A stretch of 64,000 nucleotides of DNA from Tubulanus polymorphus (lineage: Eukaryota; Animalia; Nemertea). How positions within the stretch are numbered: position 1 is the first letter of the stretch; the number at the start of each line of letters is the position of its first letter. The position numbers and the translations under genes were made by a program. The notes under the pieces were generated by a model. The model was given only the letters and a program-made list of their open reading frames with translations, did not search any database and was not told the origin of the DNA. This document shows, in pieces, positions 30,609 to 63,175 of the stretch. The stretch covers positions 11,520,275-11,584,274 of the forward strand of contig NC_134032.1 in NCBI RefSeq assembly GCF_964204645.1, in the 5' to 3' direction.

Positions 30609-30678
30609 GGGCTGCCTCGTTCAAAGCCGTTTTCACGCTTATTTAAGCGTGCGAATTGATGAATTCGACTCGTAATTG
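30609..30678 (+). other. Putative non-coding 5' exon of gene A (5' boundary uncertain)
   Basis: Conserved with 41976-42046; ends at G|GTATGT donor. Confidence 0.55.
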
Positions 30679-31380
30679 GTATGTCAGTGTTTACGCTTGG
30701 AGGGAAACTCATTCAAACCGGTTGTCACTTGTAATTGTAAATTTAACGTTGTGTTTTATACCTACCTGATGCCTGATGATGGCTGCCAAATCTGAAATTT
30801 GTTTTCTACATGCCCTAATTGTGATTTTGTCTATAGACTATAGCTCATCAGATTGGTTCCGATATTGCGTGCTGCATTATTGCACAAACGTACTGGACAT
30901 TACATCTAGAACTAAGCTTACAATCCCTCCAGGCTCCAAACCCTCAAATTCAACTGCGGCGCTTGATCAGTTGATTGACCAACTTCCTCAGTTCCTCAAT
31001 AATGATCGTGAACACGTAAACTTCAATTAAATTCTCCCATCATGTCAAGTGATACCACATAGCCTTACCAGCTTACTGCTTTATTTTATACATTAGAAAT
31101 TATCATTAAAGGATTGAACAATATCACTACCCATGATTAATTCAGGAAATGATTGATTGTAAAGGGGTTTCGGGTTTCTAGCATTCTAGCATTATAATCT
31201 AGGTACCCGGTATAGGATGGTCTGAATACCAGATGATTGTTGGGAACAATGTCAAGGGACTAGGAATAACGCTAATAGTTAGGATTTTTGTGTACAAGGG
31301 GTTTAAGAACTTTTGAAAAGATCGAACTCAAAAATATTTTCAATTTTCAGAAGTTAGATTGATAGAGAAGTGACATTAAA

Positions 31381-31528
31381 ATGTTGCTGTTGGAAGGTGT
31401 CGAGGTACACGTACGCGAGGATGCATTTAAAAGTTGTCTGCGTCGACACATGGATTGGTTAGATGAATTAGTTATTGATGCTGATGATAATACCTGGTTT
31501 AGATGGATGTCACGACGTCAAACTAAAG
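31381..31528 (+). CDS. Gene A constant exon 2: 49-aa conserved N-terminus (exon begins at 31351)
   Basis: ttttcag acceptor at 31350, in-frame TAG upstream, aaaATG, AAAG|GTTTGT phase-1 donor; 45/49 aa identical to gene B. Confidence 0.8.
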
Positions 31529-31840
31529 GTTTGTCCTTAAAAATCCTACCACAAATTCAGGAAGCAGTTTGATTTGTTAAATCTTGATAAGGTCCCTATG
31601 AATATTTGATGGAAAATTCAGATATACTACGATATTACAACATCAGGTGGCTATTCTAATTTTGAGGGAGCCCTGTCTCATCAAATTGTTGTAAAGCTTA
31701 AAATTGGATAAATCTTATATTTACTAAAGAAAAGAAACCTAAAGTGATTAAACTCACTGAAGTGACATTCATAAAAGTAAAGAGTTAAAGTTGTCTAAAT
31801 TTTTGTAAGTTCCTGTAAATATATAACTTTTAATATTCAG

Positions 31841-32587
31841 ATCAAAGAAGAGGACAAATGAATCAAATGTCCGGAGATGGAGGTGTTATGTACATCGGGA
31901 CGAGTCAATCAAAAACCGGACAAAAAAGACGATTTGAAGTTCAAAGCAGAACCAGAACCATCGCTCAGAATGTTTTAAAAGCTGTGAAACGTCGGAGAGG
32001 AAGTGCAGCTGTACAGGGGGCGCTACCGCAGCAACGAGTTCAATCACAAACTATGACAGCTGTCGGGCAGCAACCGATCGGTCTGTTACCGGAAACCATC
32101 AATTCTAGACGTAGTTCCACTGCAGTTCTAGACTCGACTGGATGTGAAATTTTATCAAGCGTAGAAATTGAATCAACTTCAGAAAGTATTAAAAAAGCTG
32201 ACGATGAATCAGATGATTCTACGAATCTCAATGATTCAAATGTTGATGCAGCATCAATGAATCAAAATGAACCTAATGTTGAACAGTCAAGTGAAAGTGG
32301 ATTATCGACGACCCCGCCCCCGGCAGTCTCCAGCTGGGATAACACGTTAGAACAATTAGAATCGATTATAGGTTCATCTCCGTCGTTCGAACAATTAGAA
32401 CTGTTTAGCGGCGCCACCAATGGAGAAAAAGTGGATCTGAAATGCATTAAGAATGAATCGATAAAAATAGAACCGGTTGAAATATTGTCAGGAAGCGACG
32501 ACGATGAAGGTGATTCTTCTCAACCGATCGTACAACGACAACAACATGAACCACAACCGGGAACGAGTAGCAGTGTTAATCATACAG
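31841..32587 (+). CDS. Gene A constant exon 3: disordered linker ending at the common donor
   Basis: attcag|AT phase-1 acceptor; KRRR basic patch, IKNE/IKIEP, PQPGTS; CAG|GTAGGT phase-1 donor. Confidence 0.85.
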
Positions 32588-33505
32588 GTAGGTGTTAACA
32601 GCCATTTTATTTATTCGATTATCTATTCGTACAGGGTCGACTTTTTAAAAACCACATTTTGGGCATTCAAAAAATATTAGTCTTGATTCATTTGCCAAAT
32701 AGTCAGTTTGAAGGTTTTAGGTATTTTAAAAGTTATGGCCGCTGAAAAATGAATGGTTAAATTCCGTTTTGATTATATCCGATGATTAGTGGATTTTGCA
32801 AGTTGTTTTTGTGGATCTGTGGTTTTTTGAAGCTCGTCGCATGCTGTGTAAACAAGGTCTATGAAATTTCGATTTAAAGCTGTCATTAAGTAAAAGTTTG
32901 CGGAGCCGAAAGGAATGAATGACTCATCAGAATTATCGCAAATAGCAAATGTTTTCGAAAATTTTATCCTTCGACTCCCAATTTAGAATAAATTGATTCG
33001 GTAGTAGTTAAAACGAGGTTCGACTGTAACTTAGTAAAGCCCTGAACACACTAACGATTTTCGCTGCAAATTTATCGCACAGCACGGACTTGACACACTA
33101 TGCGATCAGCCATTAGCGACCTCATGCAAATCAACTAAATCAAATAATCTTTATTGATCACTTGATACAAAGCTCATCATTGATTGGTTCGATTTCGAGT
33201 CCTTCGTTTCCTTCCAATCGTTAACGTCACAAACGGATCTACACACAAGTTTTTTCTGCCCTGCAGATCATACCCAGCATACGTGGTGAAAAAAACCATT
33301 CAAACGGTTTCATCTTTAAGGAAAAAACAAACAGTACATTGGCATGAAATGGGCTCCAATGGATTCATGATTTTGACCATGAGACATCGGACTCCGTAGA
33401 TTGAATATAAAAAAGGATTTTTAGTCGCATGGGTCGACATGAGTCATAACGGTTGGCTGAATTGTGTAGATGTAGCTTAAACTGGATTCCCTCGACTCTT
33501 TGTAG

Positions 33506-60548: not shown

Positions 60549-60742
60549 GTTTCGTGATCGGATTGGCGTGGCATCTCGGAATGGATGCTTACCGTCCGAT
60601 CGGAAGTGGGCAGAATTTGTCAGGGATAGCGACATCAGTTGCCCCGGTAACCACTGTTAAGGATAAGCGTCGAAAACACGCGTGCGGTTTTTGTGAAAAG
60701 CGATTTTCAAAAGTGGGGGATTCGAATCAGCAGATTGGTTGA
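60549..60742 (+). pseudogene. Cassette B14, truncated within finger 1
   Basis: atttgtag|GT phase 1; CGFC present but His ligands lost at the repeat junction. Confidence 0.7.
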
Positions 60743-61117
60743 AAATGATATTAGCTCTGCATTGGTGTTGATCCCTATAATGCGCCTATTTTTAAAAAAA
60801 AAGTACCCTTTTGGGACACCAAAACAAAATCAAACGAAATCTACCAATCAAATAAATAACAGGGTCAATCCCTATTTTAAGATAAAAAAAAGCATCCTCT
60901 TTCTCGACGAGACCCCGGATCCGCCCCGGTGGTGTACATAGGCTTCATCAGATTCACCTGACTCATCTAGCAGTGGACGCTCGTGTTTCAAATAGAATAG
61001 TTAACCGTTAAAGTGCTATACTCCTCCCGTAGTTTTATTTATTCCTTTGCCTTGAACTGGTCACACAATATTGTATCAAAGGAAAACTAAAGTGTGGATT
61101 CTGATGGCTATTTGCAG

Positions 61118-62034
61118 GTTTCGTGGTCGGACCGGCGCGGCGTATCGAAATCGACGCTTTCAGTCAGATCGGAGTCAATTCTGCGGAGATGGCCTCACCA
61201 GAAGCCACAGATCAGGATAACTTTCAGAAAAAGGAGTGTAGAATTCGTGGAGAGCATTTTGTCGAAACGGGAGATCTAAATCGGCATGAACGAAGACCGT
61301 TTAAATGTTCGACGTGTGAGCTATGTTTTGTACAGGAATCGCATTATAAACAGCACATGAAACAGGTTCATTCCGACGAACGACCGTTTAAATGTCAGTT
61401 TTGCGATAAAAGCATGCAAGCTCTCTATAATTTGAAACGACACGAGCTAATTCACACCGGCGAAAGACCGTTTGAATGTCCCATGTGCGAGAAACGTTTC
61501 GCGCTGAAATCAAATTGCAAACAACACGTGAAACAGGTTCATGCCGATAAACTACTGTTTAAATGTCCGACGTGCGAGGAATGTTTCGCGCTGAAATCAC
61601 ATTGTGACTCGCACGTGAAACGCGTTCATTTCGATAAAAAACCGTACAAATGTCAGTTTTGTGGTTACAGGTTTGATAGCCGTAAAGATTGTGAACGTCA
61701 CGAGCGAATTCACACCGGCGAAAAACCGTTTAAATGTCCCACATGCGAGAAATGTTTCGCGCTGAAATCACATTGTCAAGCGCACCTGAAACTGGTTCAT
61801 TCCGACGAACGACCGTTTAAATGTCAGTTCTGCGATAAAGGAATGAAATCTAGTTTCCATTTGAAACAACACGAGCGAATTCACACCGGCGAAAAACCGT
61901 TTAAATGTCCGATGTGCGAGCGACGTTCCATGACAAAATCGAATTATAACCGGCACATGAGACTGGTTCATAACGTTGACCCGAATAGCCTCGTGTCATC
62001 CGGGAAAGCCGGTGACTGTAAGATTTACAATTAA
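61118..62034 (+). CDS. Cassette B15, 8 fingers
   Basis: Phase-1 acceptor; three further out-of-frame fingers at 62120-62396. Confidence 0.87.
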
Positions 62035-62864
62035 TATCAGTTTTGCGATAAAGGGTTTTAATTCTCATGCTCGTGTTAAATGACATGAGCGAACACACGC
62101 CAGTGAAAAACCGTGTGTCCACCGGCGAAAAACCGTTTAAATGTTCGATTTGCGAGAAACATTTTACGCAGACATCAAGCTGTTACCTTCACATGAAACA
62201 GGTTCATACCGATGAACGACCGTTTAAATGTCAGTTTTGCACTAAACAGATGAAAACTCGCGACCATTTGAAACAACACGAGCGAATTCACACCGGCGAA
62301 AAACCGTTTAAATGTCCGACATGCGAGAAACGTTTTATTCGGAAAGATTACTGTAAAGATCACGTGAAACGCGTTCATAACACGTTCGATTCTTAAATAC
62401 TAAAGTTTGAATATAGAAATGAAAACTCATTTGGAATTCCCTAGTACTGTTTAGTTATTTTCTACTATCCAAAAAGATAATTCAGTTATTGTTTATGATG
62501 GGACCGGATATATTATATTATATTATTATATATAATCAGATGTATTTATATTTTGTCTTATTATGGTACGAGAATAATGTTCTTGGTATTTCAGTTTTGG
62601 ACTAGGCGTTTTGTTTGGAAGCAGCATATATTACGTTGCTAGAATGATGTGATTTTTGTGTAAGATATGATTATATCTGTTTAATAAATAAGAGTGAAAA
62701 TGATGACTTTCTTCGTGTTGGTTTTTGTCGTTTCCCGTCAGGAATACTGACAGTGACTTGAGTATCATCCTGCATTTTGAACAGGTCGCACATACCGGGT
62801 ACCTGCTCTAATTTTGTTATCATAAAATGAAAACTAAAATCCGGATTCTGATGGCTATTTGCAG

Positions 62865-63175
62865 GTTTCGTGATCGGACCGGCGTGGCATCTGGGAATGG
62901 ACGCTTACCGTCAGATCGGGAATGAGCGGAATTCGTCGCGGATGAAAACTGTAGGTCGCCGTAAGCGTCGAAAACCCGAGTGCAGTTTTTGTGGAAAGCG
63001 ATTTTTGAAATCGGGGGATTTGAATCGGCACGAGCGAATTCACACCGGCGAAAAACCGTTTCAATGTCCGACGTGCGGGCAACGTTTCAGTCGGAAATAC
63101 CACTGTGAACGGCACATGCAAGTGGTTCATTCCGATGAAAAACTATTCAAATGTCAGTTGCGACGAAAGGTTTGA
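62865..63175 (+). CDS. Cassette B16, 2 fingers then frameshift
   Basis: Phase-1 acceptor; remnant fingers to ~63350. Confidence 0.8.

Follow-up and report, generated by a model that had tools for sequence, protein, structure and literature searches.

How are proteins made from a locus in which a few gene heads, devoid of any DNA-binding domain, are each followed on the same strand by an array of zinc-finger exons? This question is raised by a stretch of 64,000 nucleotides (nt) of the palaeonemertean ribbon worm Tubulanus polymorphus (Nemertea), positions 11520275-11584274 of the chromosome-scale contig C8 (NC_134032.1), hereafter the window, numbered 1-64000. The window contains two such genes, A and B, the constant exons of which match only RefSeq proteins of T. 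polymorphus. From the architecture of these genes, we consider it probable that splicing joins the donor of each head to a single exon chosen from several terminal zinc-finger exons ("cassettes"), in the manner of the Drosophila gene lola (longitudinals lacking). The argument is carried by the anatomy and splice phases of the cassettes, their lack of donors, the selection acting on them, and RefSeq junctions of the head-to-cassette type.

Genes A and B would thus represent a Tubulanus-specific family of transcription factors. A two-exon head encodes a 49-amino-acid (aa) N-terminal domain (exon 1) and a long disordered, acidic and basic region (exon 2). The strong phase-1 donor of exon 2 would then be joined to a single 3'-terminal exon out of several downstream, every one of which has a conserved branch-point/polypyrimidine/AG block, a phase-1 entry, C2H2 fingers (2 to 8 or more) and its own stop. 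This would yield, per head, a set of products with a common N-terminal half and differing DNA-binding ends, all without a BTB domain. For genes A and B themselves, we infer that several cassettes are used per head; the route of joining (cis or trans) and the role of the head are likewise matters of inference.

Both genes sit inside a 255-kb head-to-head cluster of paralogous loci, and we assembled 276 kb around the window for cluster-wide tests (one 274-base gap being kept as N). The cluster comprises ~15 gene heads (16 exon-2 donors), 84-91 cassettes and ~386 C2H2 fingers, with the ~15 constant-exon paralogues spread over 11.41-11.64 Mb. As in lola- and mod(mdg4)-type genes, the constant 5' exons end in a single donor and encode no DNA-binding domain. 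At every one of the 16 exon-2 ends of the cluster there is a strong phase-1 GT donor (generic donor score 8.7-10.7), of the form CAG/GTAGG in 15/16 and CTG/GTAGGT in 1/16 (the slash marks the exon boundary); left unspliced, the frame usually meets a stop within the next 3-12 codons. An initial annotation of the window had placed these donors at 32587 (gene A) and 45164 (gene B), and both are indeed CAG/GTAGGT in phase 1. Its single "constant exon" is real as a finger-less donor exon; it is, however, exon 2, the 49-aa exon 1 upstream having been missed.

Downstream of the heads, the finger pattern (C-x2-4-C-x12-H-x3-5-H, with TGEKP-type linkers) is that of C2H2 fingers (PF00096 / PF13465), with 120 fingers on the + strand of the window vs 2 on the - strand. 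Across the cluster, heads and fingers occupy the - strand left of ~11.493 Mb and the + strand right of 11.496 Mb. The strand switch of the fingers coincides exactly with the head-to-head junction; the ~386 fingers are co-oriented with their own heads, and the opposite strand holds only a handful of chance matches.

The entry into each cassette is similarly uniform. The acceptor block YTNTTTGYAGGT occurs 16 times against 0.14 expected, with 16/16 occurrences on the + strand, and the last ~18 intron bases are kept even across unrelated cassette types (tCTNAYggctNtttgYAG/GT). This pre-acceptor block looks like a branch site placed near the AG, as judged from its sequence, and the putative branch-point/acceptor block sits exactly where coding conservation begins. 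When all AGs ahead of the first finger, back to the upstream stop, were scored with a generic acceptor matrix, the best-scoring AG proved phase-1 compatible in 91/113 finger blocks cluster-wide vs 37% of all AGs, and in 27/27 at a score of at least 6. The initial annotation had assigned phase 1 to all cassettes that it checked. This agrees with the best AG in those 91 blocks, yet, because the cassettes are paralogues, their phases are not independent observations.

At their far ends, the cassettes lack what an internal exon would need: a phase-1 donor scoring at least 4 is present in 4/84 tails, vs 3/84 in phase 0. Since there is no excess of phase-1 donors, the cassettes as a class are terminal, not internal, exons. 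The downstream exons thus combine an acceptor of matching phase, a DNA-binding domain and an own stop with the lack of a donor, as do those of lola- and mod(mdg4)-type genes; the proposed architecture of own stops and phase-1 acceptors is borne out, i.e., one strong donor per head is followed by many donor-less finger exons on the same strand. Private upstream exons, named in the initial annotation as a finding that would speak against shared heads, were also sought in the gaps between cassettes (median 824 nt, minimum 73 nt). Only 12/72 gaps hold any short ATG-initiated open reading frame (ORF) ending in a strong phase-1 donor, and therefore there is no systematic private first exon.

Selection provides a further line of evidence. 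The ratio of nonsynonymous to synonymous substitution rates (dN/dS) lies below 1 in 17/17 independent (non-overlapping) closest cassette pairs (range 0.10-0.75), and in the closest pairs exon identity exceeds flanking-intron identity. Pooled dN/dS is 0.37 for the fingers and 0.50 for the leader, and 0.53 over the ~404 codons that separate the acceptor from the first in-frame methionine, the last value lying ~4-5 standard errors under neutrality by our own two-proportion estimate. Judged from these codon comparisons, the cassettes are evidently under purifying selection, the stretch ahead of the methionine included. Such selection implies that the peptide directly behind the acceptor is translated, which in turn requires splicing from an upstream phase-1 donor.

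Annotation models contain junctions of precisely this kind. RefSeq P0002 (LOC141909538) is encoded exactly by gene A and joins 32587 to 33506 (GT-AG, phase 1). Among the paralogues, (i) isoforms X2 and X4 of LOC141909519 share a donor (last exon base 11627121), which X2 joins to 11627756 and X4 to 11629109, (ii) the head donor of P0003 leads to the cassette at 11620271, leaving out an intact 5-finger cassette at 11618625, and (iii) P0011 leaves out a cassette of 27 fingers and connects one head with the exon 2 of the next head. All of these paralogue junctions, as modelled in the annotation, are GT-AG and phase 1. The NCBI pipeline generally calls alternative isoforms only with transcript support, which may hold for these.

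A number of observations weigh against the splicing of each head to one of several cassettes. The agreement in phase is in part inherited through duplication, and ~15% of the units are decayed. AATAAA is not enriched past the cassette stops (48 sense vs 41 antisense, in a low-power test on AT-rich DNA), and any poly(A) signal lies within 500 nt of the stop in only 43/84 cassettes. The sole RefSeq model in the window, that of gene A, uses only the first cassette, the protein being finger-less because this cassette is frameshifted; a RefSeq protein for gene B was searched for and not found. Four read sets (runs X1-X4) covering 44800-50799 are DNA-like, in that their contigs span the donor at 45164 and the introns, and these contigs, which behave as DNA, contain no joint from 45164 to an acceptor. 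Next to no sequence words of the stretch occur in run X5 (2015), possibly RNA.

Many of these same points would be expected if only the proximal cassette, or very few, were spliced to each head, the others being unused relics of tandem duplication: the DNA-like read sets over 44800-50799 show no splice joint to a distal cassette, poly(A) signals are not enriched, the gene A model takes the first cassette only, and decayed units number 3/16 in B and 2/4 in A. For gene A, three units had been proposed and about four are found, of which two are frameshifted (one, at 35800..36780, without a clean acceptor) and two, at 37581 and 40325, are intact. For gene B, the proposed count of 16 acceptor-bearing units is matched; three of them (56191, 57718 and 60549) are decayed, whereas the other 13 retain acceptor, long open frame and fingers. 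That dN/dS falls below 1 in every pair, and in the leaders ahead of the methionine too, that exons are better conserved than their flanks, and that paralogue models use distal cassettes while skipping intact ones all argue against relics, and we regard this account as unlikely.

Cassettes could instead be transcribed from their own promoters and trans-spliced to the head, with an equal outcome at the protein level. This mechanism is known for mod(mdg4) and in part for lola (PMC13490949), a conserved intron block follows shortly after some head donors, and the missing poly(A) enrichment offers no argument for simple cis processing. However, all cassettes lie downstream of their head on the same strand, for which cis-splicing is the simplest explanation, some gaps measure only 73-250 nt, and the intron block is present in only 3/16 heads at up to 4 mismatches: besides the copy past the gene B donor, GAGCTCGTCCCATGCAGCAC is found at C8:11498435 (+) and 11490378 (-). 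Trans-splicing as the general route thus appears quite unlikely.

Serial inclusion, in which the cassettes would be successive internal exons of very long proteins with many zinc fingers, corresponds to the RefSeq chain models P0007, P0012 and P0013 (1194-1577 aa), and donors do exist in a few cassettes or leaders (junction 3 of P0007; the leader-only mini-exons of LOC141909519). Against it, cassette tails show no phase-1 donor enrichment, P0007 has GT-AG ends in only 3/10 junctions, several of the others having AG..AG ends and falling on the T of a TAG stop codon, and P0012 translates an intron/acceptor tract (WFSWLFAG). The chain models were rejected as true structures for their non-canonical junctions, and serial inclusion is very unlikely. 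Finally, independent single-exon genes in an ordinary tandem ZNF cluster are highly improbable, since, although some cassettes have an internal methionine as a possible ORF start (e.g., MDAYRQ), this residue is not conserved (IDAYS, IDAFS variants), 32/84 cassettes have no methionine before the first finger, the sequence ahead of it is under purifying selection, the conserved branch-point/acceptor block marks the exact start of coding conservation, and finger exons do not each come with a start or upstream coding exon, ~15 heads standing against 84-91 cassettes.

If alternative splicing of head to terminal cassette is the mechanism, the nature of the shared half becomes central. A scan of the heads for Pfam domains returned no match and no BTB/POZ, in keeping with the initial annotation, which had recognized no BTB; nor was a known fold found for the N-terminal domain. 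Alignment of 27 copies of this domain gives the consensus V.V.E..LK.CL..H.D.LDE.VI.ADD.TW.RW...R, with two invariant tryptophans. Its AlphaFold2 model consists of a β-hairpin and three helices (confidence score pLDDT ~91 over residues 10-40), for which neither Foldseek (E > 6) nor an exhaustive VIA scan (Z <= 3.7) found a match in the PDB, and a search for look-alikes in the ESM Atlas gave nothing usable. On its predicted structure, the domain is not a BTB.

Some 23 divergent copies of the domain are found elsewhere in the T. polymorphus genome, and searches of 1.84 billion representative and 5.8 billion clustered proteins returned homologues from T. polymorphus only, which may reflect database content. 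The domain is also not tied to one type of C-terminus: RefSeq proteins P0015 and P0016 end in two C2H2 fingers, P0018 in a homeodomain (Pfam E = 8e-20), and P0017 and P0006 in a non-finger region. We lean, if only slightly, towards a nemertean lineage having independently invented the lola design, coupling a domain of 45-49 aa, found so far in T. polymorphus only, to a swappable terminal DNA-binding exon. On that same balance, the terminal module would consist of C2H2 fingers, a homeodomain or another non-finger end, and one branch would have grown into the 255-kb cluster of ~15 heads and ~90 terminal phase-1 zinc-finger exons. An independent origin of the lola-like design is plausible, although the case for it comes from negative searches.

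In their design, the Tubulanus loci would work like lola, yet they lack its BTB domain. The two share constant 5' exons that converge on one donor and a same-strand array of alternative 3' exons, each with an acceptor, C2H2 fingers (often a pair) and a stop. They differ in that (i) the constant part of lola is a TTK-type BTB, a domain specific to arthropods (PMC11426971), as opposed to a 49-aa domain of no relation to it and a disordered exon, (ii) the Tubulanus unit has itself been duplicated ~15 times in a 255-kb head-to-head cluster, (iii) its exon 2 is phase-symmetric, with RefSeq isoforms even concatenating heads, and (iv) isoform production is proven for lola, whereas for Tubulanus it is predicted from genomic architecture and annotation models. 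In Drosophila mod(mdg4), the common exons likewise receive a single alternative 3' exon from a set of more than 30 (PMC13490949). There, however, the variable exons code for FLYWCH domains instead of C2H2 fingers, the isoforms are all trans-spliced, and some of the variable exons are encoded on the other strand, while Tubulanus cassettes are all co-oriented with their head. The KRAB-ZNF genes of vertebrates and ZAD-ZnF genes of insects resemble the Tubulanus cluster in pairing a lineage-restricted N-terminal domain with rapidly duplicating, clustered C2H2 arrays (PMC12947871). In those families, effector exon(s) are private to each gene and come with just one finger exon, compared with ~5-6 finger exons per head, without starts, in Tubulanus.

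Our full-text literature searches found no such locus described outside arthropods or in nemerteans. To our knowledge, the textbook cases of 3' DNA-binding-exon swapping, i.e., lola, mod(mdg4), fru and their relatives, are all from arthropods and all have a TTK-type BTB. A second, unrelated case in a spiralian would, if true, make the design convergent and not a peculiarity of BTB genes. It would also offer a natural system for how one donor picks among many terminal acceptors, with on the order of a hundred factors possible from the cluster, and the phase-symmetric exon 2 could give concatenated heads as well. Current automatic annotation would moreover be shown to mis-model loci of this kind, rendering them as giant zinc-finger chains. 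The heads also define an N-terminal domain that is new and linked to transcription factors.

The features of the window are collected in Table 1. Its first array is not part of a BTB gene; it belongs to a paralogous head ~22 kb upstream of the window. Past the window end, gene B continues with three further cassettes.

Table 1. Exons, cassettes and other elements of genes A and B and of the neighbouring array, in window coordinates
Feature	Positions	Strand	Description
Array 1	662..16192	+	16 mostly two-finger cassettes; distal part of array of paralogous head
Gene A exon 1	31381..31528	+	conserved 49-aa N-terminal domain, phase-1 GT donor; exact map of RefSeq P0002, domain motif
Gene A exon 2	31841..32587	+	constant, finger-less, phase-1 acceptor, phase-1 donor CAG/GTAGGT; RefSeq P0002 map, no Pfam domain
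A cassette 1	33506..34168	+	acceptor ctctttgtag/GT, leader stop at 33633, fingers in other frame (frameshifted); used by RefSeq P0002
A decayed cassette	35800..36780	+	leader and finger blocks in different frames, no clean acceptor
A cassette, intact	37581..38590	+	8 fingers, phase-1 acceptor
A cassette, intact	40325..40701	+	3 fingers, phase-1 acceptor
Gene B exon 1	43487..43634	+	49-aa N-terminal domain, phase-1 donor AAG/gt
Gene B exon 2	43959..45164	+	constant, finger-less, low-complexity/acidic, donor CAG/GTAGGT, phase 1 at both ends
Intron block GAGCTCGTCCCATGCAGCAC	45421..45440	+	~260 nt past gene B donor; common to two other heads
B cassette 1	46533..46915	+	2 fingers
B cassette 2	47166..47551	+	2 fingers
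B cassette 3	48076..48389	+	2 fingers
B cassette 4	49004..49401	+	3 fingers, CAG/GA acceptor variant
B cassette 5	49926..50734	+	7 fingers, CAG/GA acceptor variant
B cassette 6	51593..52263	+	6 fingers
B cassette 7	53387..53685	+	2 fingers
B cassette 8	54109..54743	+	6 fingers; then finger fragments 55151-55518
B cassette 9	56191..56462	+	decayed, TGA at codon 11 past acceptor
B cassette 10	56935..57410	+	4 fingers
B cassette 11	57718..57783	+	decayed, acceptor retained, early stop
B cassette 12	58289..59064	+	7 fingers
B cassette 13	59604..60079	+	4 fingers, recent duplicate of 56935 (94% nt)
B cassette 14	60549..60743	+	decayed, cut within first finger
B cassette 15	61118..62034	+	8 fingers; then finger fragments 62052-62396
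B cassette 16	62865..63175	+	2 fingers

Within the B array, 56935-59603 and 59604-62300 are recent tandem duplicates of a two-cassette unit of ~2.67 kb, pairing 58289 with 61118 as well as 56935 with 59604, and a decayed acceptor-bearing unit (57718, 60549) follows the first cassette of each copy. The fingers at 50386-50750, 54291-54692, 58467-59000 and 61557-61910 are built from a 171-nt (57-aa) two-finger unit, so that two finger types alternate, one H-x3-H with a TGEKP linker and the other H-x4-H leading into DERPF; array 1 has the same H-x3-H / H-x4-H pairing in its two-finger cassettes. A 21-nt tandem repeat (7 copies, 91% matches) occupies 46909-47054, in the 250-nt gap of B cassettes 1 and 2. 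A very high-copy repeat lies at 48600-48999, between B cassettes 3 and 4, with a summed contig depth of ~34,000 in run X1 vs ~30-60 nearby and many loose ends at 48690-48740. The array also contains a retroelement tail at 52855-53127 (-). The GAGCTCGTCCCATGCAGCAC block is reminiscent of the conserved intron motifs of mod(mdg4), yet it is not universal across the heads of the cluster.

Between array 1 and gene A, 16200-31300 forms a finger-free spacer with a GC content down to 0.31-0.35 at 20-28 kb, carrying ORF fragments resembling those of long interspersed nuclear elements, e.g., at 19168-19413 (+). Outside the window, isoforms X1-X4 of LOC141909519 (C8:11624113-11629794) string two or three tandem exon-2 copies together via leader-only mini-exons with acquired donors, which is possible because exon 2 is in phase 1 at both ends. 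At C8:11631639-11636301, P0006 joins a paralogous head to four exons without a Pfam match, which encode a Cys/His-rich region and then a basic helical C-terminal part, not C2H2 fingers. The P0018 locus (C7:16160144-16169936, -) has a 7.4-kb intron before its homeobox exon, and the two-finger gene encoding P0015 (C8:10774655-10774831, -) likewise has a homeobox-like exon on its strand, 22 kb downstream of the exon for the N-terminal domain.

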